Shown here: piece by piece, positions 7,698 to 61,084 of the stretch
Layout: every line of letters starts with the position of its first letter
How positions within the stretch are numbered: the first letter of the stretch is position 1
The notes under the pieces: generated by a model
Seen by the model: the letters and a program-made list of their open reading frames with translations, nothing else
What the model was told of the DNA's origin: nothing
Database searches by the model: none
DNA from: Trichosphaerium sp. ATCC 40318
Lineage: Eukaryota; Protista; Tubulinea
DNA length: 64,000 nucleotides
Reading direction: 5' to 3'
NCBI GenBank assembly: GCA_038496445.1
Contig: JALMLS010000065.1
Location: 248,001-312,000 of the forward strand
Made by a program: the position numbers and the translations under genes

Positions 7698-9094
7698 ATG
7701 GCCAACAAGACAAGAAAAAGATTGCAAATTAACAAACCAAGCGTAGGCGTGCCCGGCACAAGCATGGACAGAGTATTTAATGTGCCAGAGCTGGTTCTAG
7801 CTGTGATGGAGCAAACGAACAGTTTTAAAGCGATTATAGCCTTCTCAAGCACCAACAAGCTCGCTCGTGACATAATATGGTTTCCTTTGAATACAAAACA
7901 ATTATTCAAAGCTCAATGGGACAATCCTTTGTTTTACGGTCCAATTTGCGAATGGCCAACAAAACTGGATGGTGCCAGCACCGTAGATAACTTCAGTGCC
8001 TCACAATACCTATGTTTTGCACGTCACTTGGAGAAACAGTATCAAGTACGTCATTTTTAAAAATATAACTTTGAAAATCACGTGTACTTACATCTATACT
8101 TGAAGAGTGTCTTAAAAGTTGACAATGGTTTTTTCGATATTGAAACAGGAGAAATGATACCTGAACCCAACCACTCTTTAGCTTACAAAAGTCCTATGGG
8201 CGTATTCGATCCCCAATCATATCTACAATCTAAATTTGAGAATGGGGACACCTATGTCACTTTAAATGCTAGCACATGTGCTGGGTTTTGTAAAAAAACA
8301 AAAAAGAAACTGTGGGAAGTACAAACTAACAATTTCACCACAGTACTAGATAAGCACAATGTAATATTAGTTTGTGTTGAGAGTCAACCAAGTTTATTTT
8401 CGTCTACAAGAGCTATGTTTGCAGTAAACCTAAAGGATGGTATGAAGAAGTTTTAATTAAGAATCTAACCACTTTATGCATTTCTTTTGTTATGTTTGTT
8501 TTCTTTGGTTGACACAGTTTAGGCTCTATTTTATGGACAAAAGATGTTATAATGTCAGTTCCAGGAGAAATTTACTTATGGACCTTTGTTGTAGCAGGTA
8601 AGTGTATTTACATCAGATGTTCAGAAGAGGAAACTGTTGTGTTTGATATCAAAACTGGAACAAAGGTTGACATACTGAATCACCAAGTCTTTAGCGCTGC
8701 TCATTTAGGTAATAGTATATTTATTAGAGACCAAGAGTATGTATACAGGTATAAACAGTTCAAAAATATCTTTAAAATGGTATGGAAGAAAACAATCATA
8801 GGAAGAGAAACACAACTATATTTTTTTTCAAATAAATATGTTCTCATAGTCACTCTAATACTCGGTGGGTACAACAGTCAACAAGTTAATCTTAGATTGG
8901 TAGATAACTTAGGGGATGTACTTATATACATTGATTTGGGTTTTCCACGGCATACCCGCTTACGTAAACATGTTTCTATTCAGATAAGAGGAAAACAAGG
9001 AATTGTTTTTTTATCAAGAACAATGTTGATATCATATTGTGTTTGCCATTGTGTTGGATGGGATGGCTCTATAAAATGGACACGTGGTACATAG
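7698..9094 (+). CDS. F-box-like N-terminus + probable PQQ-type beta-propeller, 2 introns
   Basis: Basic leader KTRKR, F-box-like VFNVPELVLAVM..FSSTNK, and repeated blade-end motifs (KKLWE, DGSILWT, KMVWK, DGSIKW). Confidence 0.5.
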
Positions 9095-9197
9095 GATATT
9101 TGAAATGACACAAAGTAAATGTAGTTAATGTTATTTAATAAATCTGGTTTTCAGCAAGGTGTGTGAGGATAGTTTATAACTTGTTTTCTTCAAAATT

Positions 9198-10685
9198 TCA
9201 AATATCCATGTCAATATCCATATCACTTGCCTCATCTTCGCAGCTTGAGTATGACTCTAAAAAAAATAAATTAAATTAATGAAGGTACTTACAAGCAAGA
9301 ACTTGCCCCAGAATTGATCCAATAGATCATGGAGTTGTGGATCAAAATGAATTTCTTTATGGGTTCCAAAGGCATTGACAAAGAAGAATAGCCTTGTCAA
9401 AGTGCTAACAATAGAATTAATGAGGAATGACGGAAAAATATGAACCTCTTTTGGTCAGTTCTATGACATGATCGTAGATGCCAATACATTAAAGAATGTG
9501 CTTTAGAGCAATCAACTTGTTCGCCTGTAAAGTAATAATGAAAATGCTAATATTAGCCAAGTTTGTTATTACCTGTGCTATCGTACTGCGTTAGCACTTT
9601 TGCTGCTAATGACAGTAACTTTGGACGCTGAACCTTGTACGATTTAGTTGCAAAACAATTACAGTAGTGCGTTTGTACCTTAACTACAAGTTGTCCAATG
9701 AGTTCATCTTTGAGCTGCTCAGATTCTCTTAAAAAAGTTTGATTGTTAAATGATGACAACAGCAATGTAAGCGCTGTTACATTCAAGTCATAGTTCTAAA
9801 TTATATTATATACTCATTCTCCACTTTCTATTACTAACCTCCTTGCAAGAGAGTTTCTGAGCCAACGCACATACACACGGATTTTGGCCTATTGCACAAA
9901 ATGTTTGCTCTAAGTGAGAAAGGAATTAGCGTTACACTCTTCTCGGTTTGTTATCACGTGTTACCAAATGCGACAAGATAAAAATACGATATTAATTCGT
10001 TTGGAACACCACGTGCTACCAAGTGATAATAAAGAGGACCGTGTCTTCTTGTAGCTTGAGTCCAATCTTCAAGAGTTGACGGCACAAAAGCTTTCACAAA
10101 CGCTCGAATTGATATCTCCTAGAGCAGTGTCAATGTACATCTACAAAGAAAGCGTACTCTTAGCGATGGGATAGTTGTACATCCACTCTGATCTTTTAAT
10201 AATCTCGTAGAAGATCTTGAAGCGAATAAGCGAAAAAGATGGACTGCTACAAGCTGGCGTCGTGGGCCAATGCCTCGTATTGGACCGTCAAGGCCAGGAT
10301 CTTCACCGTTTATTACCGTTGAATCTGGGTTGTATTTAGTGAGTAAATAATATACCGTCTTTGTACCCGAAGGTCTTGGCAACATTGCTTCAAGAAGAAG
10401 CTCATACACTTTCGGTAAATTATTCGATACAACCATGTCAACATTGCGAATAAAGTCGTAGTGGCATTGACAAGGATGAAGGTGCGCTATGGGTGTACTA
10501 GTACAAGCACACTGAAATACGATGTTGTTCCAGTTAGAAAAAAACTCAATAAGGTTAACTGGGGGTGCGTGTTGTGGAAAACGAGGTGCTGAAGAAAGAA
10601 GTTAGGCAACGTTTTGTTGATTGTATAAAACCACTAAAATATCACGTGATAAAAACGTACAACCAAAAAAAGTGTAGCGGGTCAT
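9198..10685 (-). CDS. Hypothetical protein, spliced; 3' end uncertain
   Basis: Open exons joined by GT-AG introns from ATG at 10685 (MTRYTFFG|SPRFPQ..). No recognisable domain. Confidence 0.5.
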
Positions 10686-10867
10686 GTGAGTGTCAAATAG
10701 CAATAGTGCGTGAGTGCTTATACGTACAAAAGGCGAGTGAAACTAAATTGGCGCCAGTAAACCAAAGTCATCGCACTTAAATTAATGATGGTTAAGTGAG
10801 ATAAACGTTTATCTCACTTGTAATTTCAAGAAAGCGCTCCGTCTCGTCAAAAGCGTAGTATTACACG

Positions 10868-11981
10868 ATGGCTGATATAATCAAACGATTTTTTGGCCAA
10901 ACACCAAAAGCACCGTCTGTGCAGGATGCAATGGCATATATATCTGGTATGATGGCGTTGGTAGCTATCTTTGAGCTCTTTTGTAATTGCTGTTTGTTTG
11001 TTTGAAATGTATTTACATTATACCTCGCATCTATGCCAAATTACTTACTCTTACGCAGCCACACTCGAAATGTTAGAAAAAAAAGTAACGTACCTTGAAA
11101 AAAAGCAAGACGCGTGCACAACAGAAGCCACTGCTTTGCTTGCGAAGAACCAAAAGGCCAAAGCACTGTTATGTATTAAACGACGCCGTATGTATGCGGC
11201 TAGTCTAAAACAGCTTGAAAACGCGCAAACAAACCTAGAATTTGAGAGTACGGGCAATAGGCTTGACGTTAAACTATGTAACTTTATTTTTGTAGAGTTT
11301 GCTTTAGAAAACGCTCAAGTGGTCGGTGAAATACTCAAAGCTATAGAACTTGGAACAGCGACCTTAAAAGCGTACGAACAAACTGTTTAAAAAAAAAACG
11401 TTACGATCTACTAACGCATGTTATAGCCTTAATGACGGGCTTGGCGACGCTGAAACTATAATGGAGGAAGCTCAAGAACAGCGAGACATAGCTAACGAGG
11501 CAAGCGTCATTGTGCAGAAAATTGACTAAAAAAACCATCTCATCTCCCTCTCTCAGCATTCTGTTGTGTATTCATTGTTTTTCTAGACTTTTGAGCTTAT
11601 GAGCGAATTCACACCAGCTTGTTTGGATGGATATGATTCTGATGAATTACTAGCTGACTTCAAAGCAGTATGTCTTTTGGAAAGAATCCAAAAAAAAAAG
11701 TTTTCTTGTTTTTTTCTTTTATTGTCCATTTCACAGAACACTTGATTTGATTCAACATTGGACTCATATTCCTCTTATACCTAACGTGTTTTCTAATCAC
11801 TTCTTCCTAGGAAATTGAACAGGATAATGTAGTCATGCAACAAGATGTTTCTAACCTTGTACAACATGACTTATCAGAAATGTTCCCAACACCCCCAAGA
11901 AATGTAAATCAGCAAGAAAGCAAACAAACAGAAACAGAAGACGCTTTTGCTCAATTGAATGAGTGGGCTCAGGCTAACTAG
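10868..11981 (+). CDS. ESCRT-III Snf7/CHMP4-family protein, 5 introns (one GC-AG)
   Basis: MADIIKRFFG..LEMLEKKVTYLEKK..KALLCIKRRRMY..ALENAQ..DSDELLADF, ending in the acidic tail AFAQLNEWA. Confidence 0.85.
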
Positions 11982-12116
11982 TTGTAATAAATAATAAAAT
12001 TTGATAGATTAAGGTTGTTGCTTCATTTAAATAACTGTCTTGTAAATGAGATCTCAGCACACAAAATTTGCGAGTAGAACACCTGGTATCTAATTTACCA
12101 ACTATTGGTTTTATTT

Positions 12117-14786: not shown

Positions 14787-14999
14787 CCCTTGCGAACGCC
14801 AATAAGATCCAATTAGTTTGCTTAATGTAAGACTTAAGTTGTGTTCTACACGTGATACAACTTGTGCTTTTTTGTTCACATCAACAAGCCCAAGCGCATT
14901 CTAACATTAACTGGTAACAGGTCTCAAAATACAATTTATTTTTCTTCAGCAATATTTTTGACTCTGCCAACAAGCGATCTTGCTTGTACCAAGTTATGG

Positions 15000-15883
15000 C
15001 TAAGTTTCAAAGTATTTATCACTTGCATTACCAGCATACATAACCATGTTAACTGTTAACTTATCCAAAGGATCGAGTGGATCATAAAGAGAACTAGTAC
15101 TACCAGGAACACTTTTTTCAGGATGAGGACCACATAGAATAACCCTTCCTTGGCCAAACAATCCGGATATAATAGCAGGACAGTTCTTTATGTCTTTTTT
15201 CAACCTCTTTGACCATTTACCAGGTACAGTATCAACAGATGCAATGATGCCAATACCTTTGCACGTGTTTTGTTGATAAATAGCACCACTCACATAAGAA
15301 CATGTGAAGCCTGAACTACTCCTTAATACTGTTGGTAGTAGAGTCTGTGATGTATGTTTAGAGATGGGTTTGAGTGTTATGATGCCTCTAGCATTTCCAG
15401 GAGCGATTTTAAATTCGGCTGGTAATAGACCTAATGGGAAGAAACTCGGCCAAGAATTTTTTCTGTTTTGAGTCCTTTGTCCTCCAAGATATGCGCCTGC
15501 ACAGATACCCACATAGCCACCACCTGAAGAAACAAAGTCTTTGATAATCTTACAACCTTCTTCACCAATGGTACGAGCTATTGCTGCTGCTAGAAAAGAA
15601 GGAGAAAATCAGTGAAAACATTCTTTATTGAACGAATTTGTCTTTTTTTTTCTCAACTTGTGTCGGCGTTTTTTCAGTTTAAACAATTTAATTATAACAT
15701 ACCAGTGCCTCCTGGTACTACCATGACATCGTAATTATCAATAGTAAGAGTTTCAGGTATTATATTATGCGCAGAGATTATAGTGCTTGTACGAAGGCTA
15801 CGAAACGATTTTGTGGCTAAAATAGCTGGGTCTGCACCTTTACCAATAAAAACAAAGACTCTAATTTGCCCTGAGTGGTCCAT
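15000..15883 (-). CDS. Stand-alone class-I glutamine-amidotransferase-like protein (BPL_N-type), 1 intron
   Basis: VMVVPGG, IKDFVSSGGGYVGICAGAY (nucleophile-elbow Cys) and GRVILCGPHPE (His-Pro-Glu). Confidence 0.75.
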
Positions 15884-16107
15884 TGTTGAGTTATTCAAAA
15901 AAAATTAAACCATGACTTTCAACGACTTCTGTGTTCACTCCAGGTTTTTCTTTCGCAGTCATTATGTGAGACTGCTTGTTTGGCTTGATTTAAGTGTTAT
16001 CACTGTTTTTAAATGGCGTAGAATTCCTAATAGTTGTACGACATTGTCAGTGTAGTACAAGGTTAATACAAGACGTGGAGAGTCTTCGCAAATGGAATTG
16101 AATTTTT

Positions 16108-18700: not shown

Positions 18701-18996
18701 TTTTAATACATTGCCGTATTTTAGTTATATCAAGTCGTTCAAGGGCGTCATTTAGTTGTATCTCATGCTTAGTGCGTATAGATGTACGTTCCGCCATTTA
18801 TTAGTCCCTTTGCATAGTTTTATGTGGAATTCTGAACTACAGTTTAAGCAAGGAACCCGACTTAAGATTATTTCAAACTGTACTGTAGATTATCTAGCTA
18901 GGTGTTTGAGCTACCAAGCTAGATGTGAACAGTTAGAGGTTTTCTCAAGAAAGTCATATCACGTGACACACGTAATATCCACAGAAATGGATAATT

Positions 18997-19136
18997 ATGT
19001 TAGCAACAGAACAAGCCCGCTCAAAACTACTTCAGTTACCGCCAGAGATGTTAAAATGATTGACGAAAGAGGAAGTATAGTGACCAATGCAGCTGTCATA
19101 CTAGCAACGACTATCAGTTCTTTTCAATTCAAATAA
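18997..19136 (+). pseudogene. F-box remnant
   Basis: ATG opens MLATEQARSKLLQLPPEMLK, followed by a frameshift or stop. Same LLQLP.E motif as the intact F-box genes. Confidence 0.35.
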
Positions 19137-28130: not shown

Positions 28131-28689
28131 TGTGTAAGTTTGTGGGAGTATTAGCGAACGTCAAGCAAAGGATGACACCATCACCATCGGTTTAATTTGT
28201 ACAAAATTGAACTAAAATTGACGTTTACAACTTACCAGAATTCATTGCTTACGTCATAGTGCGTAACAAGGATCACTCATCACTGGCATTACTTTTCTGA
28301 AAGAGCAAGCAGCGCTTTTGGGCACCATTGCTTTTAGAAATTTGCTAATTTTTTGAGTTTGAAAAATATGGCTTTGACAGTGAGTGTCAGTACGTTTCCT
28401 CAGTACAGAAAAAACGAATCACAAAATGGGTTTTGCACCTATAAGTATAGACCATAGATACATATTCAAAATACCAGTGGTGGTGTAAGATTGTGCTGAG
28501 GTGAGTAAAAACGTCTCAAAGGTTCTTTCTTGAATTCCAGTGATTGGCAACAAGCAAATTCGTAATTTTCGACACTATGGGTACTTTAGAAATTTACAAA
28601 ACCATAAAATGCCAGAACGGATTTACATAAAAGGATTCTAACCAGATAATCTACAACTATGGTACTAAAAACGCTGTGCATTGCCTTGT

Positions 28690-29020
28690 TTACAACTTGT
28701 CCATTAACATAAACACAATGGTTTGCAAGCTGTCCAGGTACCACTCTCTGTAGTCGCCGTTTTGTATACCAACAACAAGCAGGTGTGTTTTGAGTTGCCC
28801 ATTGTAAATCACTCAATGTGCCATTATGTCTATCGATCAGATGGTAGAGAGTGGCAAGGAACTTCATAAATATGTAAATAATGGATTGAGCAAAGGATGG
28901 CAAGAGAATGAGCAACTTAGGAACATGGCAAACAGGTTAACTACTGGATGGTATGAAAAAGGACAACTGGTAGCACAAGGAGTTTATAGTATGAAAATGG
29001 ACGCTGGAATTGTTCACTGA
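28690..29020. pseudogene. Degenerate MORN-variant repeat fragments on opposite strands
   Basis: Minus strand: NGQLKTH..GIQNGDYREWY/GQLANHCVYVNGQ, frameshifted. Plus strand: NGLSKGWQENEQL..TGWYEKGQLVAQG. Confidence 0.55.
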
Positions 29021-29079: not shown

Positions 29080-29763
29080 ATGAAACGCAAAAGAGAACGT
29101 AATGTATTAGGTACGCGTGCTTCTTTACTTGTTATAACCGTACACATAGGTAAGAGGTCTACGATCACTCAACAGCTACCACCCGAAGTGTGGGACACGA
29201 TCCTATCGTATTTAACGACAGCTGGCCAGTTTAGAGATTTCGCGCAGTCATCACGACGATTTAACGCTTTAGCATGCTCCTCGCGCCATAAACCGCCTTC
29301 TTACGCCAACTTGATAGTCCATAACGCAATTAAATACGACCACGTGAAAAACCTTGTAGAATGCCTTAAATACTACAATCCCTGCTTAGACGGTTACAAA
29401 AAAGATAGTACACGTGATAGGATTTGGAAACTTAAATGCAGACCTCTTTCTGGGTACTACCTAGAACTTGATGTAGCAGAAAGTGACACTCTAAGAGAAT
29501 TCCGAGAACAGGTGTGTCTTGAACTTGGAGCAGAACATACCTTATTCTGGGCCGGTAAAAGACTAAAACCAGGGGTTCATTGGTACAGTGGTGTTACTGT
29601 TAAAGAAGATACTACAATGGGCAAATTGAATCCTGGCGTTAGAGGAGGTTTCCCAACTGTTCATTGTCTAGTTTGCCCCAACGATAAACAAGGTAGAAGG
29701 AGATCACCCCGTCTACAGTTGAAAAGAAAGGTGGTGAATGGTAAGAATATAATTTCAACATAA
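29080..29763 (+). CDS. F-box + ubiquitin-like domain protein
   Basis: Basic leader MKRKRER, likely 39-nt intron 29111-29149, F-box QLPPEVWDTILSYL..SSRRFN, and UBL-like LKCRPLSG..LDVAESDTLREFREQV..LFWAGKRL. Confidence 0.65.
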   Translation: MKRKRERNVLGTRASLLVITVHIGKRSTITQQLPPEVWDTILSYLTTAGQFRDFAQSSRRFNALACSSRHKPPSYANLIVHNAIKYDHVKNLVECLKYYNPCLDGYKKDSTRDRIWKLKCRPLSGYYLELDVAESDTLREFREQVCLELGAEHTLFWAGKRLKPGVHWYSGVTVKEDTTMGKLNPGVRGGFPTVHCLVCPNDKQGRRRSPRLQLKRKVVNGKNIIST

Positions 29764-30675
29764 ACAAGGTTGTTTTCTCTCTTCTTACTATTTTCTTAAG
29801 GCTCTTGTATTCTGTTTAAACGGTGGTCAAAACAACCTGGTAGGTTTAAATCAGCATGGCCTTCTGCCTATCAATACCTACTAGCAAGGACTGTAGAGTG
29901 CAATAGCCCTTGTGCAGCAAGAGTACTACTTAAAAGTAATAAATTAACAGAAAAGCAAGCCAAGAATGTACTGGAACACAAAGATCTTTGTAAATGGTTT
30001 GCAAAACACCATATTACATTTACATAATAAACATCTTACAGGGCTACATATGCGTAATTCTGTCGATTTACTCAAGGCTGAATAGCCAACTAAATTCGTC
30101 AGAATTCTACTTGCAAGACCATACTTAAGAAAACCAAAAAGTAACGCTACGTTATTTCTGAACATGTGAGATATTTCAAGCGTTTGAACAAACTAGCCTG
30201 ATCCAACAAAGCCAAACAACCAACTGAAGCAGTTTATACGATAGCAAGCAGAAATCACCGACTAAAACTATCACTTGCTTCTTTGAAAAATATGTTTCTT
30301 TATTTCATTGCATTCGCGATTGTGTTATGTAGACTGGAAATGTATGGGCCCAAACATGCGTTACTTGTGGTGTCACCCATTCTACAATAGCTGTTATTGG
30401 GAACGATATAGTAAGCATCAAAAACTGAAACTGATGACAGTTTACTATTACTACTGTATTTCTCAAAGTGGAGACATACGCAACACTTTCAATAAAATCT
30501 TGTTTCGCATTTTGCACTATTTATCGCACGCTTAACAAATTGCTAGTTTTTTGGTGATACACGTGAAGAATATTTCTGGTATTGTCGTTTTGTACTGACA
30601 AAACAATGTAGGTAAGTTATTGTGGTCAAAATCAGTCATTGATAAGTCGCTTTCACTGATTTTGTTTTAACAAGT

Positions 30676-32400: not shown

Positions 32401-32989
32401 TGAGAAAGCGATCAACTAACCCTGAAGGAAGTTCACTTTTAACGTCATACAAAACATCGTTAGAAGTGGTTGTCTTGCTGCTAAACAGATTGTATACGCT
32501 CGATAACATTCAGTTTACTGTCTTGTCACGTACGTGTCTCAGGCGAAAGCAGTCAATAAACGTCCAAGATTAGTACACAACCCACTTAGGACAATCGCTC
32601 ATGAATAGCAGTGGTGTATGTTCATGAACCTTTTTGAAATGCACGTTCTGTTGAACGTTTTACAGTATTCTGGCTTGCAATAGAAACAACTAACATCTAC
32701 ATTCTAAGGTATTGTAGTACTTTCCTTTGTCCGCTCAACCATTAATTTCATATAGACATAGGAGCGTGCTTGTGAGACAGTTTTAAAACATTAGGATTGT
32801 TTGATTTTAAACAAATTTTCAAACTTGTGCAAAAACTGTGCTTGTACGATGTGTGATGTTATTTTTTTTCTTAGTTGGAAATCGCAGCAGATTTATTGGT
32901 TAATATTAGACTTGTTTGATTTGCTATAATTTTGCCGTCAGAACAACAAACACTTGCTGGCACTACCTGTTAAATAAATGGTTTGTCAA

Positions 32990-33370
32990 TGTTTTCACAC
33001 AAACACCTGTCAGCGCTTTAATCAATTTGTTTGATATTGAAGTGCGTGCCACTAACATCAAGTGTATGGACATTTTTAAGTGCTTTGACACCCTCATCTG
33101 TCTGGGGCAATAAGCAATGGAAATAGTATGCACATCTTTAAGTACTTTGATACCTTCATCTGATACTGAAGTGCCACTAAGATCAATTTCGTGTACATGT
33201 TTAAGTGCTTTGAAGCCCTCATTCTCACATTGGGACAATCAACAAGGGAAATAGTATGTACATCTTTGAGTGCTTTTATAGCCTCATATGTATGCATTCA
33301 CAAAGGCTGAGGTATGGATATTTGTGAGAGATTTGATGGCTGCATCTGTTACTGAAGTATAGCTCAGGCA
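32990..33370 (-). pseudogene. Decayed VHTI-type LRR array
   Basis: LSYTSVTDAAIKSL, KALKDVHTISL, VHEIDLSGTSVSDEGIKVL, spread across several frameshifts. Confidence 0.8.
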
Positions 33371-33859
33371 AAACCTTCCCTCAGAATGCCTTATAGGTTG
33401 GTCATATCTGTTTATGCTATTTGCTGTTTAAACAGAACTTGATTCGATTGCTGTACTAAGTGCGTATTTGATTCATTTAAAACCTATCAAACCTTCGTGG
33501 TTATCCGGTGTAATTGTATTAAAAACATTTGAATGGTTACTGCGATAATACGCCAGCACTTGTTCTATCGAAACACCCAAAAAATTTATCTTGGCTTGTT
33601 GCACACCGTTGAAGCTTGAGTTCTTGTGATTTTACCTGAAAACACGTGATTTACAGCTTTATTTTAGAGTCCTGATTCTCTTAGAACCTTTAACCTCTTA
33701 AGATATGAAGACGGCGATACAGTGATCATACAAAATAAATAGCACGTGTCAAAACAAAAAAACCTCACGTGATATTTGATTTTAATGTTAAAGTGTTTAA
33801 GAGTAAGGAACCAAGTTATTCCACTGTCAACTTTTTTCCTGACTGTCTTTTGTAAAGCA

Positions 33860-42777: not shown

Positions 42778-43340
42778 TTACAGTACTATAGTTTTATGCT
42801 GGAGTTCATCCTCACGCCAATATTTTATCTCTCCTGTTTGCTTTCCATCAACATAAAATCGTTGAATTCGTAATTGGCCATCGTCATGCCAACATGTTTC
42901 TTCTCCGTGTTGAACATTGACAAAAAAACATCGAACTGATAGTTTTTCATTCAAGTGCCACCACCTTGCCTCTCCGTGCTCTTTACCTTTGACATAGGTA
43001 AATTGTTTCTCTAACTGACCAGTTGAACGCCACCACTTTGCTTCTCCTTCTTTACAGCCATTGACATACAAAAAATGTGTCTCTAGTTGGCCGTTCATGT
43101 AGAATTGTTTATCTTCTCCATTCCTGATGAAAAGTTCTCTCCTTTACCATAAATGCATTGTTTCCTCAATTGCCCACTAGGAAGCCACTCTTTAACCTCA
43201 TATTTACCATCTTTAAGATTACTATATTGAATTTGTATTTGCCCATTCCTATACTTAAACTGACAAATACCTTCATCAATGTCATTTTTGATGTACAGGT
43301 ATTTACTTTTTAAATTGCCATTCTTATACCACAGGTGTGG
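42778..43340 (-). pseudogene. MORN-variant repeat gene with a frameshift near 43130 (pseudogene or read error)
   Basis: Repeats WYKNGNL, EWLPSGQL, YMNGQLE, WWRSTGQL and WHDDGQL lie in two frames. Confidence 0.7.
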
Positions 43341-43782
43341 CGTATTAGGGTAAAAAACAAAATACTAAAACTGTCGCTTTTAGTCAACATTCATAATCTT
43401 CAACAACAATTCATTCTAATTAGAGTTCTAACACTCTCAGTTTCCTTTCTTCTATCAACTAACCAAAGCACTAACTGTAGACGATGTTGGGAGGAAGACA
43501 AGTTGTCATGCTCTAGCGCAACGCCAAGCATTTGTTATATTATACAAGAACACTTGGAAAATAAAAGAAGGTTTTTTACAGTTTTTGAAAAACAAATTGA
43601 AAAGGAAATTTTAGGGTGGGATGTGGGTGATTGCTGCTCGCCATGTTGTTTATACGCTTTGTAGGTTGTTGTTGATTTATACGAAGTCAACTGAAGTTTT
43701 TCCTAACACGTGTACATCCAGAATTTTGGAGACGAAACAAATTAGTTTATTAAACTTGTTGCAAAAACACATGGTTATTTAT

Positions 43783-46258: not shown

Positions 46259-46913
46259 ATGGACCGCGCAAAATTAAGTAGTATAAGATTTTCCTTCTGG
46301 CAAGCTTTTGGAAAAATTTGCAGGAGTTCATACAATTTATCTCAAGCGTTCAGCTTTGTCAAATAGATTAGTGAAAATATTCGCTGGTGTTCACACTATT
46401 GATCTTACTGCGAACTACGCTGTAACAGATGAAGGCATAAAGTCACTTGCTGGTGTTCATACTATTAACCTCACCTATACCTCTGTAACAGATACTATTA
46501 TCCTCCATAGATGTTATCTAATTACTGTTGAAGGAATCAAAGCACTCAAAGATGTTCATGAGATTAAACTTACCTTCCCAAAAGACTCATGGCTAAAACA
46601 CCTTTGCAATGTACACTCTGTCGCTATTTACTCTACAAAGACTCTAACAGATGATGGAATCAAAGCATTGGTAAATGTCAAATGCCTTGAGCTTTACTGT
46701 TGCCACTCACTAACTGACTTGGCTTTTGAGACATTGGTTAACCTTGAAGAACTCAGACTGGGCTTATGCGCCAACATTACAAATGGTTGTTTACAGCACT
46801 TAAAGTCTCTGAAACGTTTTATATCTTTGAACGACTGCCCCGTTACAAAAGAGGCCGTTGCGTCAATGGGTATTCAATATGAAGAAGTCAACATGAGAAG
46901 CACACTCCGCTAG
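46259..46913 (+). CDS. VHTI-type LRR protein with damaged 5' end, possible pseudogene
   Basis: AGVHTIDLT..VTDEGIKSLAGVHTI repeats. The ATG at 46259 is out of frame with the repeat ORF and no intact F-box is visible. Confidence 0.6.
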
Positions 46914-49395: not shown

Positions 49396-49502
49396 ACGTG
49401 GTATGCTAGCGACTTTGACTTGACTTTTATTCAATTGATTTACAAACAACTGCAATGCTCTCAACATCATGCTGGAATATTTTTAGCGCGTAGAGGACGT
49501 AT

Positions 49503-51875: not shown

Positions 51876-53534
51876 TTACATATACACGTTAGTCCCTATT
51901 AACATTCTAACCCCTTCAATACTGGCGAGGGATTCAGATACTGAAGTTTCATAAGCGTAAATAGAATGTGCTCCAGCAAGTGCTTTGACACCCTCATCTG
52001 TTACTGAAGTGTTACTAAGGTCAATAGTGTGAGCTCCAGCAAGCGCTTTAGCACCTTCATCAGTTACTAAAGTGCGAGAAAGGTAAATAGAATGGGATCC
52101 AGCAAGCGCTTTGACACCTTCATCAGTTATTGAAGTGTCAGAGAGCCTAACTGTATAAACCCCAGCAAGTGCTTTGACACCTTCATCAGTTACTGAAGTG
52201 TTACGAAGGTCAATAGTATGAACTCCAGCAAGTGCTTTCACACCTTCATCAGTTACTTTGGTGTTACGAAGGTCAATAGTGTGAACTCCAGCAAGTGCTT
52301 TGACACCTTCATCAGTTACTGAAGTGTTACTAAGGCCAATAGTATGGACTCCAGCGAGTGCTTTGACACCTTCACCAGTTACTGAAGTGCTACTAAGGTC
52401 AATAGTATGGACTCCAGCAAGTGCTTTCACACCCTCATCTGTTACAAAAGTGTTTGTGAGACCAATAGTATGGACTCCAGCAAGTGATTTAACACTTTCA
52501 TCAGTTACTGAAGTGCCAGAAAGGAAAATGCCATGGGCTCCAGCAAGCGCTTTAACACCTTCATCAGTTACTAAAGTGTTACTAAGGCCAATAGTATGGA
52601 CTCCAGCGAGTGCTTTGACACCTTCATCAGTTACTGAAGTGTTACTAAGGTCAATAGTATGGACTCTAGCAAGTGATTTAACACCTTCATCAGTCAGTTC
52701 TTTACATTCGTTGAGGCTGATGGTATGAACTCCAGCGAGTGCTTTCACACCTTTATCAGTTACTGAAGTGTTACTAAGGTCAATAGTGTGAGCTCCAGAA
52801 AGTGATTTCAACCCTTCATCTGTAATGTGTTGACAATATAATAGAATAATCACATGTACACCAGTTAGCGCTTTGACGCCTTCATCAGTTACTGAAGTGT
52901 AACTAAGGTCAATAGTGTGAGCTCCAGCAAGTGCTTTCACTCCTTCATCAGTTACTGAAGTGTTACTAAGGTCAATAGTATGGACTCCAGCAAGTGCTTT
53001 CACGCCTTCACCAGTTGCTGAAGTGCTACTAAGGTCAATAGTATGGACTCCAGAAAGTGCTTTGACACCTTCATCAGTTACTTTAGTTGTACGAAGGTTA
53101 ATAGTATGAACTCCAGCAAGTGCTTTGACACCTTCATCAGTTACTGAAGTGTAACTAAGGCCAATAGTATGCACACCAGCAAGTGCTTTGACACCTTCAT
53201 CTGTTATCCGAGCATTCTTAAGGTCAATAGTATGAGCTCCCGCAAATTGTTTGGTAATATTGTCATCAACACTCCATCGTAGCGTGATTTTTGTGTATTT
53301 CAGAATACCAGCATGTTTTACAGCTGATTTTGCTTGAGCTAACGTTTTAATCATAATAGCATGGTATCCAATAATGTCGTGAACAATAGAAGCAAGTAAA
53401 CGACAGGTTTGACAAGCTGAAAAGCGCGAATTGGTCGTTTGACGCAGGATGAGCGCTATTATCTCTGTCGGTAGCTGCAGTAAACTTTTATGGGTGGTAC
53501 TGTTGATTATACCACACTTTGAGGTAGAAAGCAT
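51876..53534 (-). CDS. Intronless F-box + LRR protein (about 21 repeats)
   Basis: LLQLPTEIIALIL..QTCRLL F-box, then 21-aa AGVHTIxLxxTSVTDEGVKAL repeats with two 22-aa Cys variants. Confidence 0.9.
   Translation of the reverse strand: MLSTSKCGIINSTTHKSLLQLPTEIIALILRQTTNSRFSACQTCRLLASIVHDIIGYHAIMIKTLAQAKSAVKHAGILKYTKITLRWSVDDNITKQFAGAHTIDLKNARITDEGVKALAGVHTIGLSYTSVTDEGVKALAGVHTINLRTTKVTDEGVKALSGVHTIDLSSTSATGEGVKALAGVHTIDLSNTSVTDEGVKALAGAHTIDLSYTSVTDEGVKALTGVHVIILLYCQHITDEGLKSLSGAHTIDLSNTSVTDKGVKALAGVHTISLNECKELTDEGVKSLARVHTIDLSNTSVTDEGVKALAGVHTIGLSNTLVTDEGVKALAGAHGIFLSGTSVTDESVKSLAGVHTIGLTNTFVTDEGVKALAGVHTIDLSSTSVTGEGVKALAGVHTIGLSNTSVTDEGVKALAGVHTIDLRNTKVTDEGVKALAGVHTIDLRNTSVTDEGVKALAGVYTVRLSDTSITDEGVKALAGSHSIYLSRTLVTDEGAKALAGAHTIDLSNTSVTDEGVKALAGAHSIYAYETSVSESLASIEGVRMLIGTNVYM
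51940..53243 (-). repeat. 63-bp coding tandem array (about 20 units, high DNA identity)
   Basis: Near-identical units, read on the plus strand as ccagcaagtgctttgacaccttcatcagttactgaagtg..ggtcaatagtatg. Confidence 0.95.
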
Positions 53535-53937
53535 AGTATCGTCTTTAAAGATGTAATACAAACGATTATAATTAGGCGCAATATCACGTGATATAAAATT
53601 ACCGGTTGACTTAAAAACGTTTTGCTACCCGCTAAGTCGCTATAATCAAATTGTCGAAACTCGGTTTTCTGAGCTCTAACTTAATTGGTACGTGCAGGTG
53701 TAACGTAACGCCATTTATCACGTGCTCTAACAACTTACTGCCGACAAAATTGTTTGCCTGATAGAACATGCGGATGAACTATTTTTCCACAGCGGAAAAC
53801 ACCAAATGACGTTCAGGTATTTTACGCCTGGGAAAAGGAGAGGGAGTTGAAAAGCTACGACCATGACTAGCTTTTGATCCTATCAACTAACACCCCTCCT
53901 AGTACTCCCTAAATAAATCACGTCATTTCCTAAGACA

Positions 53938-54150
53938 ATGTTGGTTGGATGTCATAAGATCACAGAGCCTTGTGGGAGTACAATAAATGATCGTGATCTT
54001 GAAGCACTTACTGGAGTTCATACCATCAGCCTCAACAGTTGTAAAGAAGTGACTGATGTAGGTATTAAATCACTTGCTGGAGTTCACGAAATTGATCTTG
54101 GTTTCTGCACTTCAATTGGAGATGAAGGTATTAAAGCGTTGAAAGGTGTT
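53938..54150 (+). pseudogene. Orphan VHTI-LRR cassette (about 3 repeats)
   Basis: ALTGVHTISLNSCKEVTDVGIKSLAGVHEIDLGFCTSIGDEGIKALKGV, with no intact F-box. Confidence 0.75.
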
Positions 54151-54695
54151 CAAGTAGCCTTGCATTTATCACGTACCACCAGAGATCTAACAAAAGCATA
54201 CAAGGTTTCCATTGAATGGATATGTTAGCTTGTGTATTGGAATAAGATGCTCAATCAAGCTTTTCAACCTAGACAAGGTTGAGTGTCCGACTGGTTAGTC
54301 TGTTGATTTGAATGCTTGTAAATTAATCCTTTTATCTCAATGCCACTAAAATGGTAGCCATTTCAATCTTGATCTAAATGCCATATAAATTGGTAGGCAT
54401 TTCAAAAGTGTTTAAACATCGTAGTCTCCAGTAAAACTTTGCAGCCTGGAGGTTGGGACCCTGGTTCGTCTCCTACAACAAACTCCTGGAACTCACTTGA
54501 GCTTCTTAAAAAATAATACATATAAATAATACTACAAAGTCACTCCTTCAATGTTACGGTCCATCTGGTACGGTCTGTAAGGACTCAATGCCAAATAGTT
54601 AACCTAACAAACTACTAATGTCCATCTCTTAAAACCCTAACCCTACATAGACTGTGGACTCATAAAAAAAAAAAATTTATTTATTTAGCAGTATT

Positions 54696-55780
54696 TTACT
54701 CAAAGTCTGCATCCTCAAGGTTTTTACCAGTTATCTCAAAGTATTTACATTTAAACTCCTTAATGAAAAGCGCAGTGTCTGTTGGTATTGGTTGTTCTAA
54801 AATAGTCTTCATTGCAGCCATTGTTGCCACTCCATCAATAATATCATATCCAGGAAATGCTTTAACAAACACACAGTGAACAAAGTAATAGTGAGTGCAA
54901 TGTACACTACAAAACTTACAAAACTTGAGTTTGCACTGTGTCCCTGTTAGCAATTTAGACAACCGCCTTCTTGCAGTCTTTTTACGGGTTTGGGCAAGGC
55001 CTCTCAAAAATGTAAGAGTAACTGATGGAATTCCCTTTTTTTCAACAAAAAGACAGTTAAATGACTTGTATTCACTCATACAAACCTCTTGGTGTATTTC
55101 AGTGTCTCCATTTTCAATAGCATTCTTGAGCCTTCGAATAGCAATATACCTACAATGAGGGTCAGGGACTCAAAAACACTACAAAAGGACCAGGGACTCA
55201 TAAAAACACCCTTGTCTCAACAAAACTGGTCCCAAAAAAAAAATAATAATAAATAACTTACATGGTCTTGTCTGATTCATTTGCATGCTCTTCATAAACA
55301 TGTCTAACCATTTGTCCGAATGTAGAGAATCCTGTATTGCAGATGAAGCATGATGGGTACAATCTAGTATATCCAGGTACATCAGAGAGAGATATGGTAG
55401 TGTCCACATCCTTTTAGACAGGGGTGTTTTGGGGTCCCTGTGTCCACATTAGATTGATTACTGTAGGGTCCGAGTCTGATAAACGAAAATTATATGATTA
55501 CACTTACCATCTAACTCAGGGTCCATCTTCCTTCTCTTTGGAGAGTTTTCGTTGATGGGTGTCACTGTGCGTCTCTTGGTGGAAGTTGATGTTGGTGCTG
55601 ACTTGTTTCTTTTACCTAGTAGAAAGTTAGGACCAGCGCAGTCCTCTATTGCAAAAAAACAAAAATTTCAAAAGTACTTGATCCAGTAATACCCAATGCA
55701 GTGGTTCTTGCTCTATATTGCTTCTGTGCCAGTACACTGACCTTCTTCAATGTCATCTCCAAGTAATTCATAGTTGCCAT
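54696..55780 (-). CDS. C2H2 zinc-finger protein with NLS-like basic patches, spliced; one junction unresolved
   Basis: An exon reads CFIC-x12-HVYEEH (C-x2-C-x12-H-x4-H) in a frame the ORF track misses. Also SPKRRK. Confidence 0.55.
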
Positions 55781-55917
55781 CCATTTAGGGGCAGATTTGC
55801 TACATAGAAGTTACTAAGATTGATTGTGATTGATTTTTTGAAAATAGAAAAAAAAAGTGAGGCCTTGTTTTTGTTGACAGGGGGGTTTTTCAGCCTTATG
55901 AGTCCACAGACCGGCCT

Positions 55918-56175
55918 TTATGCGTACTTTATGTCCTTCATTGTTTTTAGTATGTCCTGAAGGATCCTTTTTTTCGCTTGAATGTCCAGTAGCTTACTGG
56001 TGTTGTCCAGACTGCTTAGGAACTCATTCCACTTTGGTGCAGGTAGATTTTCTTTTAAGTGTTGCAGTAATTCTTCACTGCCACTGAATAATGCAAACTC
56101 CAGGTCTTTGGTACCTACTATCTGGTACTTCAGCATTCCATTTGCGCTTAATGGAAGTGAGGACTTGTTGCTCAT
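55918..56175 (-). CDS. Hypothetical 85-aa protein
   Basis: ATG-initiated intronless ORF with helical, protein-like composition, inside the putative insertion. Confidence 0.45.
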   Translation of the reverse strand: MSNKSSLPLSANGMLKYQIVGTKDLEFALFSGSEELLQHLKENLPAPKWNEFLSSLDNTSKLLDIQAKKRILQDILKTMKDIKYA

Positions 56176-56531
56176 GTTGTGCTTGTGCTGTTTAATGGTA
56201 GTTAAGTTGCACCTTATCTTTCTTTCAATCTGTATTCAATCGCTTTCTCTAGCCATGACTAAACCCCTACAAGGTGTATTATGAGACCCATAGTCCATAA
56301 ATAAATAGAATTTAGTGTTTTCAATCAAGACTACTTCTTTGATGATAGAAAATTTCATGGTAGAAAATCCGTGATTGAAAACGGACCTTTATTTTTCAGT
56401 CAGGGGTGCCAAATAATAATAGGGTCCTGTCCGAACTTACTTTTTTTTAACTCTAGACCGAGTCCGTGATAAGTCCATTTATAACTGTGAGCCAATATTA
56501 TACTTACGACCCTCGGACTGTGGTCTCTGTG

Positions 56532-56748
56532 TAATTACTCTAAAACGTGAGATCAAATAAGCGAAAATAGCGTTTTTAATACCTCGCACCAGCGCTGTTC
56601 TGTGTAATAGCGTAATTTCGTCAATAACCTCACCTAAAGCGTAATCACTCTAAAACACGTGATTGATTATGTAAAAATAAGCGCTTTAGTACCTTGAACT
56701 AGCGCTATTATGTATAAGAGCGTAATGTGCCATATCACACCTAAAGTG
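56532..56748. repeat. Imperfect tandem duplication, 2 x about 108 bp
   Basis: taat(t/c)actctaaaac..agcgct..agcgtaat..cacctaaag repeated at about 56532 and 56642. Confidence 0.75.
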
Positions 56749-57526
56749 TTTAAATTTTACTCTGGGCACTAGCGCTCAGCAAACAACATAATTTTATTGT
56801 GTGTCCTTCTTGATTGATATTTTTTTTTGAGGTCTGAATTTATTTGACAAGGTTGTATTTTGAGTCTTTGGGTCCATCAAGTAGTTGGTGTCCTAGTCAC
56901 ATACACATGTGGAATATTGGTTTGGTGCAACTCCAAATGTCAACCCTTACTGAGCACCAATTTAGGCTTGCTTAAGAATGGGTCAGTCCCAGCGCTTAGA
57001 CAAATAAAAGTAAAGTAAGCTTTTCAACCATTGAAATAAACACCATATAATTTTTCCATGAGTCAAATTTCCGTGGCGAATGTGATGAATTGCAAGATTC
57101 AATAGTATCTAGCAATGGTAAATGTTCAAATTGGGCGCAGTTGTACTACCTATCATGCTCTTTGGCACGTTTACGATCTCGCTTTTTTTGAGGATTCTAA
57201 TTGCTAAAAACGTTAGAAACGATACCAACCCATTAGCATACTAATTTAATACTTTACCACGTGATAAAAACCGTTTAAGCAGTTCCCATGAAGATATTAT
57301 ACCAACAACTGTAAACGTCAAAAAAAGCCTTTCTTGGGCGCCACTGTACTTGTTGTGTTCAAGGCGTATTTGGGAGATAGTAGTTAACGGTTGTAGCAGC
57401 AAAATTAATACCTGTGAACATTTTTAACAATAGAAAAAAACAAGAAAGGACGCGAAAAAAACTGAATTTTCGGACGAATTCTTAGGCAATTTTCATAACC
57501 TACAGCAACACGACCAAGAAAACGGT

Positions 57527-58850
57527 ATGGCAGCGAGACGAAAAGTATGTACAATATATTTTTAACGTATTAACATGTTTTGACGCTGAATAGAGGACAC
57601 GCAAACAAAAACGGAATAAAACGAGTCTTCTCCAACTCCCAGTGGAGCTACAACTTGATATCATGGACTTGGATTGTTCTGCTTATGTTAAATGGCCATT
57701 GCTATCCAAACAAGCCGCATTGTGCTCAAGGTTTGATATCGACTTGAAAAAACAAGGTAAATGGATGAGATACAACGGTGGTAAGAAAGTAGGCGAAAGG
57801 TTTTATTCTGGTGGACTCAAACAAGGCGTTCTCAAGACTTGGCGGAAACGAGGTTCGCAGAAAAAACAATGTCATTACATTGATGACGTACTTGATGGCG
57901 AGTACAAGGCATGGACGATCAAAGGATTCCTTGAGAAACATCGGTTTTATAAGAATGGTAGGAAACATGGAGACAGCAAAATGTTCAGGAGATCAGACGG
58001 TTCTATTGTCACGCTCCTACCCTATGTCAATGGGAAGGCACATGGTGAATATAAGGTGTGGCACAACAATGGTAGACTGAAAGAGAAGTCCAATTACATT
58101 AATGGCAAGTACAGTGGAGAAAGAAAGTCTTGGTACAAGAACGGACAAGTATCACTTGAGTACTGTTTTGTTGATGGATTCATGACAAAGAAAGAGTTTT
58201 ATAAAAGTGGCAAACCAAAATATTCGTTTTTGCCGATAGGGAAAGATGGTAGAAGTGAAGAAAAGAAGTGGTATCGGAATGGTAAACTACAGCGTGAGCG
58301 TGTTTATATTAACGGCAAGAAACATGGAGAAGAAAAGTGTTGGTACAAGAATGGTAATCTGAGAAATCAGTGCTTCTATTTTGAGGATATAAAAAAAGGA
58401 GAAGAAAAATACTGGTATGAGAATGGAACCCTAAAAAGTATTTGTTATTATGACACCAACAATTCAGAAGATAAGTTTATGTCAAATAAAGAAGGTGAGG
58501 AAAAGTATTGGTTCGAAAATGGACAACTAGAGTCCCACCGCTTTTATGTTAATGGTAAGAAGGAAGGTGAAGAAAAGCGTTATTATTCATCTAATGGTCA
58601 GATACTCTCACAATGTACGTATGTAAGAAATGACAAAAACGGAGAATACAAGCTGTGGCATGAGAATGGACAACTAAAGAGGCATTGTTTTTGGGTTGAT
58701 GGACGTAAACATGGTGAAGAAAAGAATTGGTACTCTAATGGTCAATTGAAGCGTCAATGTGTTTATGTTGATGGTAAAGAACAAAATAAAAAGAACTGGA
58801 ATCGTAATGGCAAACCAATAATAGCTGATACAGATAGCTTCTGGTGGTGA
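57527..58850 (+). CDS. F-box-like + MORN-variant (MORN_2/YwqK-like) repeat protein, one intron 57545-57593
   Basis: Spliced start MAARRK|RTRKQKRNKTSLLQLPVELQLDI, then about 13 G.K.GE.K.WY.NGQL repeats in one exon. Confidence 0.85.
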
Positions 58851-59197
58851 ATTTTGTTTTAGATTGTTTGGTATTCAAGTGATAACTTTGTTGTGATTGG
58901 AATTATACAAGTGCTGCTATGCTTGCGTGTATATACATAAATACTTTACTTGACACGTGCTTTGAAGAGATTACTATTAAAAAGGCACGTTTCCAAATAA
59001 AATAATGGTTTCTATTGGTACCGTATCAATATCAACGCAGTCCTGTAAGACTTTGGTAAAGGAGCTAGTTATCTATTCCTGGTTTGTAATGTGTACGAGT
59101 ATTATAGTCCTAGGAATGTCTGAACGTTCTTAGGAATACTTAGAAAGGTAGTTCGTGTAACGGAATCCACACGTGACTACCCAACGCAATACCTTAA

Positions 59198-60040
59198 ATG
59201 AACTTAACAACAGCCATCACGTATTCCCAACTGTTGGTTCTTCTAACGTCTTTCAAGCGTATGCATCTAGAGCTATTAAATCTGTACATAGGAGAGCGCG
59301 CTAAAGTGTTGAATAACACACCGTCACGTGACAATACAATCAGTGAATACCCGACCCACTATCTACATACTCTGAGATCATTTGCTACGAATACGTGCTT
59401 GTTCTACTCAACAATACATTCTGCGAATATGTAGTGGACCACAGTGCTGTGTACCAAACCAAACATTAACGGGTTTGACTCTATCATTTAATACAAACCC
59501 AATACCCAAATTACAATGTATAACCCAAAGCATACAATGACAAGTGTTATCACTGTCAAAGTAAACTTTACTGAAGACCTTCCTAATGGCCCTTATGCGA
59601 CAAACAATGGTGGCAGTATCCTTTATATTTTTGCTCCAAACAGAGTAGCTAAAGGCTCGGAACATTGGTTTCGGAAGCTATGCTATAACCGAAGCCAATG
59701 TTGCGACTGCCTTTATTCAAGGTTCACTTATTAAAAGTCCTTAACACGTGAAGTGTTAGAAGCTAATATTCCAGAAACCAGCCTATGTAGAGATGCAGCA
59801 CAAGTCACAGTTGATTGTATGTCGAGAAATCAAGGAAAAGCAATGGAAGACAATCGTTTTGCTAAGATGGAAATGACTGCTGTACCATCAATAACTCAAG
59901 TTATGTTCAAAGGAGGTTTGATAGAAATGGAATCTCAGCTTGTACCTTCAGGCGTAAAAACTGGAGACACTCTAGAAATGCATGTTAGTATGAGCGTAGA
60001 GACTAAAATCAAGCATAAGAATCATTGCTACATTTTGTAA
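59198..60040 (+). CDS. Hypothetical spliced protein, possibly ML/NPC2-like lipid-binding fold; model incomplete
   Basis: LTLSFNTNPIP..VITVKVNFTEDL..SLC..DC pattern. A frameshift or missing exon is needed near 59510. Confidence 0.3.
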
Positions 60041-60250
60041 ATAAACAATTAAAAACGATTTCATCGGTAGCTAAAAAAACTGCTAAGCCCGTGTTTATTT
60101 AGGACAACTATGTAGCCTCCTGTGTTAAACCCAATACTGAGAATGCTTATCTTACAGAAGCAGGAATCTTCATTTATTTACGTCTTTAACAGTTTGATGA
60201 GAGTCAGAAACTTGACAATGTGTTAGCCACAGGAACACTATTGACAATGT

Positions 60251-61084
60251 TTACGGTAAGCCGTATACTCTTTGAGCTCCACTTAGCCATTTAGAAGCAC
60301 CTTCAGCTGTAACTGATGTACCAGATAATTCTATTGTATGAACGCCAGAAAGTGCTTTAATTCCTTCATCAGTAATATTATCACAATCACCAAGATTAAT
60401 AGTATGAACACCAGCAAGCGCTTTAACACCTTCATCAGTTATAAGTTCATTTTCAGAGAGATTAATGAAGTGAACGCCAGCAAGTGCTTTAATACCTTCA
60501 TCAGTAATATCAAGACAATCACTAAGATTTATAGTATGAACACCAGAAAGCGCTTGAACTCCTTTATCTGTAATTTCAGAGCAACAACAAAGATCAATTT
60601 CATGAACACCAGAAAGAGCTTTAATCCCTTCATCAGTAATTTGATCACAGCAAGCAAGGTTAATAGTATGTACACCAGAAAGCGCTTTAACACCTTCATC
60701 TGTAATACCATAACAATCACCGAGATGAATAGTATGAACACCAGCAAACTCTTTTAGGATAGTATCATTAAACTGTCCATTAAGTGTTATTTTTGTACGT
60801 TGTAGAGCGCTAGCATGTTTTAAAAGCGCTTTCGCTTGTTCTGCTGTTGATATTGTAACGCTATCGTATCCAATAACATCGTGAATGAGAGAAGCGAGTT
60901 GGTGGCATGTTTGAGAGACCGCAAAGCGTGCTTTAGTAGTTTTCCTTAAAATAAGGGCTAAAATCTCCGAAGGCAAGTGTAACATGCTTGTCTCTTGGCT
61001 AAAACGTATTAAAACAGTTAACGGAATAAAGAAAGAGAGTGCAATATACCTTTGGAACTCCGTAACTAAGCGTTTTCTTGACAT
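60251..61084 (-). CDS. F-box + LRR protein (6 x 22-aa + 1 repeat), paralog of 51876-53534
   Basis: Basic leader MSRKR, probable in-frame 51-nt intron, and LHLPSEILALIL..QTCHQLASLIHDVIGY..TKITL shared with the 51.9-kb gene. Confidence 0.9.
   Translation of the reverse strand: MSRKRLVTEFQRYIALSFFIPLTVLIRFSQETSMLHLPSEILALILRKTTKARFAVSQTCHQLASLIHDVIGYDSVTISTAEQAKALLKHASALQRTKITLNGQFNDTILKEFAGVHTIHLGDCYGITDEGVKALSGVHTINLACCDQITDEGIKALSGVHEIDLCCCSEITDKGVQALSGVHTINLSDCLDITDEGIKALAGVHFINLSENELITDEGVKALAGVHTINLGDCDNITDEGIKALSGVHTIELSGTSVTAEGASKWLSGAQRVYGLP

Follow-up and report, generated by a model that had tools for sequence, protein, structure and literature searches.

Large lineage-specific families of F-box-like repeat proteins in the amoeba Trichosphaerium, probably amplified within the host genome

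We analysed a 64-kb stretch of DNA (the window), corresponding to positions 248001-312000 of scaffold 00023 in the Trichosphaerium sp. assembly published by Tekle et al. [quoted passage not shown] The small families would include an F-box-like domain followed by a ubiquitin-like (UBL) region and another followed by an unassigned C-terminus. Each family would go back to a single founding event, which gave it a 5' micro-exon and an intron of its own, and would then have spread in the host genome as duplicated DNA units about 2 kb long, promoter included. The copies would be under moderate purifying selection while many of them decay, and almost all would be host-made duplicates, not separate transfers. 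In the encoded proteins the N-terminus would dock on Skp1-Cul1 and the repeat array would pick the target. A few founders followed by host amplification are favoured because introns and micro-exons are conserved, upstream DNA has been copied, the neighbours are host genes, and a virus shares the LRR part only. The observation from which we set out, a first-pass annotation of an F-box adaptor system in this DNA, was partly confirmed.

Five intact genes with an F-box(-like) N-terminus lie in the window (Table 1), and they are named here by their first positions: two carry LRR_6 arrays (51876 and 60251), one MORN_2 repeats (57527), one a weak ubiquitin-like region (29080) and one an unassigned C-terminus (7698). 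All five contain the L-P-x-E motif with which an F-box-type N-terminal domain of three helices and about 45 residues would begin. Six of the 13 open reading frames (ORFs) of at least 150 aa in the window are members of F-box(-like) families, and the contrast in intron density with neighbouring genes, which had been pointed out before, is real: these large family exons stand in a genome with mean exon and intron lengths of 154 bp and 75 bp (PMC10521059).

Each N-terminal type that we examined is tied to one C-terminal module. The MORN-type N-terminus leads into MORN_2 repeats at ~30 of ~30 loci read and in 42 of 48 database proteins, with LRRs in none of the 48, and every LRR-type N-terminus examined leads into the linker and LRRs. 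The idea of swappable modules is not borne out by these counts, and ongoing domain shuffling was rejected in view of the fixed pairing of N-terminus and module in the copies examined. The process is one of birth and death of whole genes, not of module exchange between genes.

The two big families also differ in their 5' structure. In the MORN family, an 18-nt exon 1 (encoding MAARRK, MSARRK, MATNKK and similar) is followed by a phase-0 intron of 42-60 nt, and this arrangement is kept down to paralogs of ~40% identity. In the LRR subtype, exon 1 is 35 nt long and the intron is of phase 2 and 45-67 nt; this structure was modelled in seven of the 11 paralogs examined, most of which start with MS[KR]KR. 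Transcript-derived proteins fit the same exon models: in P0122, a separate exon supplies the first ten residues and the remainder, starting at residue 11, is 99% identical to a genomic paralog; P0013 is 95% identical to another paralog, and P0189 begins MAAT. Small introns of 39, 49 and 51 nt had been proposed for three window genes. The 49-nt and 51-nt introns have GT..AG ends and their positions are kept in paralogs, but the 39-nt sequence in the 29080 gene (29111-29149) is in frame and absent from its five paralogs. Nor does that gene consist of one small intron and one large exon, as it has a real-looking 60-nt intron and a conserved 3' exon encoding 73 residues, which are 49-59% identical in five of five paralogs and match no Pfam family. 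The layout shared by the three genes had been taken for a common design, whereas each family inherits its own 5' exon (35 nt and phase 2 for LRR, 18 nt and phase 0 for MORN). The label "nucleus-targeted" is likewise not supported, the strongly basic leader being restricted to a close clade of the window MORN gene.

Since each big family has kept its own micro-exon and intron, its copies arose by DNA duplication in the host. The window MORN gene is 84-92% identical in nucleotides to paralogs on contigs C25 and C9, from ~630 bp upstream to ~130 bp downstream, and the end of the LRR fragment at 53917-54225 belongs to the ~2-kb unit that was duplicated with it. The window copy alone contains an insertion of 2.75 kb (54271-57016): homology to the C25 locus covers 54153-54270 and then continues from 57017 onward, and ~14 bp of the C25 paralog are matched on both flanks of the insertion. 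Retroposition was rejected, since the intron and upstream DNA were copied with the gene. The nearest pairs of paralogs in the MORN and 7698 families show synonymous divergence (dS) of 0.13-0.17 and ratios of nonsynonymous to synonymous divergence (dN/dS) of 0.26-0.61, so that duplication is still going on and the proteins are constrained. The birth-and-death component of the first-pass annotation is supported by these young duplicates and by frameshifted or truncated copies beside intact ones.

Table 1. Members of the F-box(-like) families in the window and their remnants (positions in the window).
Feature	Position	Strand	Structure or evidence
7698-type gene	7698-9094	+	exon 1 7698-8045, F-box-like; at least 2 further exons, ~8106-8439 and ~8523-9094, without assigned domain
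UBL-type gene	29080-30027	+	big exon 29080-29740; intron 29741-29800 (60 nt); 3' exon 29801-30027
F-box-like + LRR_6 gene	51876-53533	-	intronless; ~18 repeats; probable start ATG at 53533
MORN_2-repeat gene	57527-58850	+	exon 1 57527-57544 (18 nt); intron 57545-57593 (49 nt); exon 2 57594-58850
F-box-LRR gene	60251-61084	-	exon 1 61050-61084 (35 nt); intron 60999-61049 (51 nt); exon 2 60251-60998 with F-box, linker and 7 LRR_6 repeats
Decayed F-box-LRR copy, subtype with long N-terminal extension	32966-33631	-	family HMM matches in four ORFs of differing frames
Decayed MORN_2 copy in two frames, without N-terminal domain	42781-43364	-	family HMM E 1.6e-30 and 7e-10; Pfam MORN_2 48.7 and 26.4 bits
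LRR-only open frame of the F-box-LRR family	46287-46910	+	family HMM positions 115-273 only
Short LRR fragment, ~3 repeats	53917-54225	+	family HMM E 7e-26; Pfam LRR_6 28.7 bits
Doubtful, very weak MORN-like traces	28589-29017		family HMM E 0.01-0.4 in several frames; Pfam MORN_2 E 0.075

Decayed copies had been described as about as numerous as intact ones, and in the window the remnants do nearly equal the intact genes. Seven decayed copies had been listed. Those at 33.0, 42.8, 46.3 and 53.9 kb were recovered with family hidden Markov models (HMMs) and Pfam and the one at 28.7 kb is doubtful, but those at 19.0 and 29.9 kb did not survive: the 19.0-kb site held nothing recognisable with the family HMMs, and the supposed copy at 29.9 kb is the UBL-type gene's 3' exon of 73 residues, which all five paralogs have kept. 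The N-terminal piece of the copy near 33.0 kb (33476-33631) resembles the start of P0121 and P0126. The ORF at 46287, which the family HMM alone recognises, is missing the F-box and linker part, and no F-box was found upstream of it.

The families are found throughout the assembly, which comprises 70.28 Mb in 642 contigs with a GC content of ~37%. Our genome-wide numbers are first-look candidates and not validated genes, and the best 150 were scored in each search. A search with the Pfam F-box (PF00646) gave 1398 candidates, and all 150 that were scored exceeded the cut-off. There were 1039 candidates with the LRR-type F-box plus linker and 1331 with the MORN-type N-terminal domain, and in both searches 150 out of 150 scored strongly, so that the lists are saturated. 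Of the 150 best MORN-type N-termini, 26 (17%) sit in open frames shorter than 150 aa; these are among the 150 best MORN-type N-termini (17%) sit in open frames shorter than 150 aa. With ~3000 candidates in 70.3 Mb, or about one family member per 20-30 kb, roughly 2-3 are expected per 64 kb; the window is therefore typical to mildly enriched in family members, not exceptional, and the same pattern is expected in most stretches of the Trichosphaerium genome.

Amplification could be largely non-adaptive, with short intron-poor units that are easily copied, perhaps aided by mobile elements, and with most copies dispensable and decaying. Such a process would account for the near-equal numbers of remnants and intact copies in the window, for the 17% of the best MORN-type N-termini that lie in short open frames, for a compact ~2-kb duplication unit with copies on other contigs, and for the mobile-element insertion that adjoins one copy. 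On the other hand, dN/dS values of 0.26-0.61 are not ~1, many members are complete ORFs in transcriptomes, the N-terminal domains are strongly conserved, and a non-exhaustive search showed neither terminal repeats nor a transposase at the boundaries of the duplicated unit. We consider it quite unlikely that non-adaptive amplification explains most of what is seen.

The identity of the N-terminal domains was assessed by searching the window genes exon by exon against Pfam, with cut-offs of 20.5 bits for F-box (PF00646) and 24.3 bits for F-box-like (PF12937). The 60251 gene comes closest, at 20.4 bits for F-box and 22.8 bits for F-box-like, beside 80.7 bits for LRR_6. In the 51876 gene, LRR_6 (PF13516) scores 187 bits and F-box-like 20.7 bits, and the gene matches the family HMM. 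LRR-family paralogs elsewhere in the Trichosphaerium genome clear the Pfam F-box cut-off at ~40 bits.

The small families also have F-box-like N-termini. The 29080 gene scores 22.1 bits for F-box-like (E 1.3e-4), and its family has six copies, with paralogs 50-54% identical to it; we did not find homologs of this gene outside the Trichosphaerium genome. The ubiquitin-like fold that had been assigned to its C-terminal part finds no support in Pfam, where the ubiquitin family (PF00240) is matched at E 0.17 only, and the AlphaFold2 (AF2) model of the region is poor (predicted local distance difference test, pLDDT, 38), with a beta-beta-alpha-beta-beta order of elements. In the 7698 family, which has ~12 copies with paralog identities of 64-88%, exon 1 of the window gene gave no Pfam match. 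The family N-terminus aligned by hhalign with an alignment of 22 bona fide F-boxes from the same genome (70% probability, E 4e-5, 45 columns), and the neighbours of the 7698-gene N-terminus in a protein atlas are F-box clusters (score 0.92). The propeller previously attributed to this gene was not recovered, as a Pfam scan of exons 2 and 3 showed no propeller family at E up to 5.

The 7698, UBL and MORN types also occur together elsewhere. On contig C131, a stretch at 49.5-59.2 kb contains one gene each of the 7698, UBL, MORN and LRR types, and the first three are ordered and oriented as in the window. With 6 UBL and ~12 7698-type copies in 70 Mb, it is unlikely that two such 7698/UBL/MORN neighbourhoods would arise by chance (rough estimate, 1e-3).

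The MORN family has a well-defined N-terminal domain. The 57527 gene scores 107.8 bits for MORN_2 (PF07661) in nine stretches, and its exon 2 starts with a three-helix N-terminal domain that bears the LP.E motif and is strongly conserved in paralogs. The AF2 model of this N-terminus (pLDDT 85) has helices at residues 17-26, 28-36 and 39-45 (block means 80-89) and hairpins after residue 55. The best fold matches of the model are SET7/9, radial-spoke proteins and viral MORN proteins. In the protein atlas, the neighbours of the MORN N-terminus (0.86, a lead only) are giant-virus clusters in which a Pfam F-box stands beside MORN_2 in 10-19% of members. In a word search with the whole MORN protein, most matches (23-43% identity) were bacterial proteins of the YwqK type or unnamed metagenome proteins; they stem from the repeats and give no indication of origin.

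An SCF-type adaptor role had been suggested for the window proteins and is probable, given the F-box(-like) N-termini, the Skp1 (PF01466) domain at 3-4 loci in the Trichosphaerium genome, among them C137:79701-79844, and the cullin 1 listed in its gene table (PMC10521059). By their domain content, the proteins are probably SCF substrate adaptors.

Several points weigh against host-amplified adaptor families founded once each. The count of at least six F-box(-like) genes made in the first-pass annotation stands for the five intact genes, but none of the five passes the Pfam F-box gathering score. The MORN-family N-terminus aligned with the F-box by hhalign over the first helix only (probability 18.7% in 15 columns, rising to 69.7% in 22 columns when the alignment was widened), and with the Pfam F-box models none of 48 MORN-family proteins gave a match at E 0.01 or lower. 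Fold searches with the MORN N-terminal model in Foldseek and VIA returned only beta-hairpin or MORN matches and are uninformative for the helical part. We class the domain of this family as putatively F-box-like. A sequence profile search of the PDB with the MORN and 7698 N-termini gave nothing. The adaptor role itself is predicted from the F-box(-like) domains and the presence of Skp1 and cullin 1, and what speaks for a single founding of each family is that the intron keeps its position in the few dozen copies sampled, as opposed to a family-wide tree. Finally, several pairs of contigs carry matches of identical score and open-frame length (for example C25:2574 and C370:26783; C294:20229 and C459:1086; C1:579369 and C429:18024; C165:16431 and C406:12599), which suggests redundant contigs or haplotigs that would inflate the family counts.

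The same families have already been linked to giant viruses. Lateral transfer from giant viruses was concluded from Alien Index scores in this genome, with 1581 gene models put down to such an origin, in which F-box and MORN were the domains seen most often (PMC10521059). In the published table of lateral transfers, the P450 gene is followed by TRSP22807, with one intron and a best match to Harvfovirus, TRSP22810, with no intron and a best match to Tupanvirus, and TRSP22815, with one intron and a best match to the Indivirus ILV1 "F-box domain protein" (PMC10521059). Based on gene order and intron number, these three models are probably the 46.3-kb ORF, the 51876 gene and the 60251 gene.

A viral homolog of the LRR family was found with a degenerate DNA pattern for the LRR unit, which picked out one IMG/VR contig, IMGVR_UViG_3300027739_000006 (102 kb). 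The contig is a bona fide contig of a nucleocytoplasmic large DNA virus (NCLDV), with a capping enzyme, an Erv1/E10 oxidase and an Rpb1 fragment. Its F-box + GVHTI-LRR gene at 2765-3406 encodes a protein of 213 residues, which shares 56% identity with the 60251 protein along a stretch of 149 residues (E 1e-45). An HMM of the amoeba LRR-type F-box and linker scores this viral protein at E 0.6 and a Clydonella protein at E 4.7e-4; the viral protein shares the consensus-like LRR part only. The F-box-LRR architecture is also present in the Clydonella and Stygamoeba transcriptomes. Because giant viruses have this LRR type joined to another kind of F-box, there has been gene transfer between amoeba and virus at some point, in one direction or the other.

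We also observed, 3 kb from the viral F-box-LRR gene, a gene at 6199-7182 of the same contig whose product has an LP.E-type N-terminus and, behind it, ankyrin repeats. A single virus thus has several adaptor-like proteins that differ in their repeat modules.

For the MORN family, fold matches of the model in BFVD were MORN proteins of Orpheovirus, Pithovirus, Hyperionvirus and Harvfovirus. A profile of the MORN-type N-terminal domain matched 50 cluster representatives among 1.84 billion, with no viral match at E 0.001 or better. Nine of ten sampled matches are transcriptome records, and two such records that were mapped match the Trichosphaerium genome at 95-99%. Three scans of viral contigs with single proteins or a family alignment gave no match. 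The sole sampled MORN-type N-terminus outside the MMETSP/JGI transcriptome records was P0228, on an ENA metagenome contig of 11,225 nt, and it has a differing amino-acid composition.

These results bear on whether the window genes are domesticated giant-virus genes, each founder, or many members independently, having come by lateral transfer from Nucleocytoviricota. The first-pass annotation had raised this origin, which is already published for the genome (PMC10521059). Several lines of evidence speak for it: the 1581 putative giant-virus models with F-box and MORN in front, the best matches of the published models beside the window P450 gene to Indivirus ILV1, Harvfovirus and Tupanvirus, the 56% identity of the NCLDV gene product to the 60251 protein, the giant-virus MORN and MORN_2-plus-F-box proteins among the BFVD fold matches and atlas neighbours of the MORN N-terminus, and long intron-poor exons against a genome mean exon of 154 bp. 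The structure and context expected of viral genes are not found, however. Throughout the expansions, each family has kept the spliceosomal introns and micro-exons specific to it, the copies lie scattered one by one between host genes rich in introns, with no viral hallmark gene seen among the window ORFs, and the duplicated units include host-type upstream DNA. In addition, the F-box and linker are common to the amoebozoan Clydonella and not to the viral protein, and neither the MORN-type N-terminal profile nor the three viral-contig scans gave a viral match. At most a few founder transfers would be needed, not hundreds, and we regard descent of these genes from viruses as unlikely. An endogenous giant-virus island was rejected in view of the host-gene neighbours and the introns in the families.

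Transfer may also have run from host to virus, with old amoebozoan SCF adaptors being copied by giant viruses in order to hijack host ubiquitination. A hijack of this kind has been proposed for F-box effectors from Legionella as well as from chlamydiae associated with amoebae. The occurrence of the same architecture in Clydonella and Stygamoeba, together with the N-terminus and linker common to Clydonella, would fit such a capture, as would the enormous copy number and diversity in the host compared with single genes on a viral contig, the introns ancestral to the host families, and the precedent of F-box-LRR effector families in symbionts of amoebae (PMC4209131). Against this, the comparison covers a single viral locus, the viral F-box is unlike the host type and so does not bear out a simple capture of an entire host gene, and the presence in two other amoebae could itself stem from transfers. 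We consider capture by viruses possible but less likely than not.

Compared with the earlier study, which dealt with the same genome and the same families and found F-box and MORN domains most often in its 1581 putative viral genes, one difference lies in how the copies are counted: there, each model is a transfer by its Alien Index (PMC10521059), whereas here a few founders and host amplification fit. How the families are built, with their conserved micro-exons and introns, their DNA-level duplication units, pseudogenes and copy numbers, is not described in that study. If almost all copies are host-made duplicates, the claim of 1581 genes needs re-weighing, since most of those models may be host duplicates of a few founders.

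Repeat-protein families with MORN, F-box, ankyrin and LRR domains have been described in giant viruses of the Mimiviridae, Pithoviridae, Orpheovirus and Pandoraviridae (PMC5753266, PMC5995976). They have the same domain pairs as the Trichosphaerium families, but the F-box and linker differ, introns are absent, and the MORN-type N-terminus has no viral match by HMMER. The F-box/BTB plus LRR effectors of amoeba-associated Chlamydiae, reported by Domman et al. 2014, resemble the Trichosphaerium families in combining an F-box(-like) domain with LRRs, in forming large birth-and-death families with pseudogenes, and in their amoeba hosts (PMC4209131). Unlike the nuclear Trichosphaerium genes with their spliceosomal introns, these effectors are bacterial, intronless and secreted into the host.

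The closest eukaryotic parallels are the F-box families of Caenorhabditis and plants, which likewise comprise hundreds of genes with variable substrate domains, lineage-specific expansion and many pseudogenes (PMC8120010). In Trichosphaerium, the partner domains are GVHTI-type LRR_6 and MORN_2, as against FBA/FTH or kelch in Caenorhabditis and plants, the number of copies per Mb is far higher, and the F-boxes of the window are divergent and below the Pfam cut-off. The families would offer a tractable case of extreme expansion of ubiquitin-ligase adaptors in a protist. The N-terminal domain of the MORN_2 family is itself well defined, with profile matches almost only in transcriptome records that apparently come from Trichosphaerium.

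By analogy, such a repertoire could act in a manner similar to innate immunity, with variable LRR and MORN arrays that recognise viral proteins, or those of intracellular bacteria, and deliver them to the proteasome. Such a role in pathogen recognition has been proposed for F-box families that have expanded in nematodes and in plants. The very large repertoire, its birth and death with young duplicates and pseudogenes, and the giant-virus look-alikes, which could be mimics or decoys, are consistent with a defensive role, and comparable arguments have been made for F-box genes of C. elegans (PMC8120010). However, dN/dS of the young pairs, as averages over whole regions, is below 1, the argument proceeds by analogy with nematode and plant F-box expansions, and non-adaptive drift can yield the same pattern, as was argued for the chlamydial families (PMC4209131). 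We consider an immune function doubtful on this evidence.

A bolder extension would see in the F-box(-like) adaptors, perhaps two thousand in number and plausibly amounting to several per cent of the Trichosphaerium genes, a diversifying intracellular recognition repertoire in an arms race with giant viruses. The GVHTI-LRR and MORN_2 arrays that the viruses bear on F-boxes of their own would be mimics or decoys, and the reported "unprecedented viral gene trafficking" would then be largely the footprint of a shared family instead of 1581 separate transfers. It seems to us improbable.

Around the five intact genes and the remnants, the neighbours in the window are intron-rich host genes, including GH2, Snf7, P450 (~45 kb), sulfatase and cellulase genes, and no viral hallmark genes were seen among the window ORFs. 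A sixth F-box-like gene lies at 1540-1855 on the minus strand and is apparently split by an intron, with its start (MSTT...VPDDIV) in the ORF at 1709-1855 and its second half in the ORF at 1540-1725. Three Pfam F-box models match the latter ORF at E 0.006-0.02.

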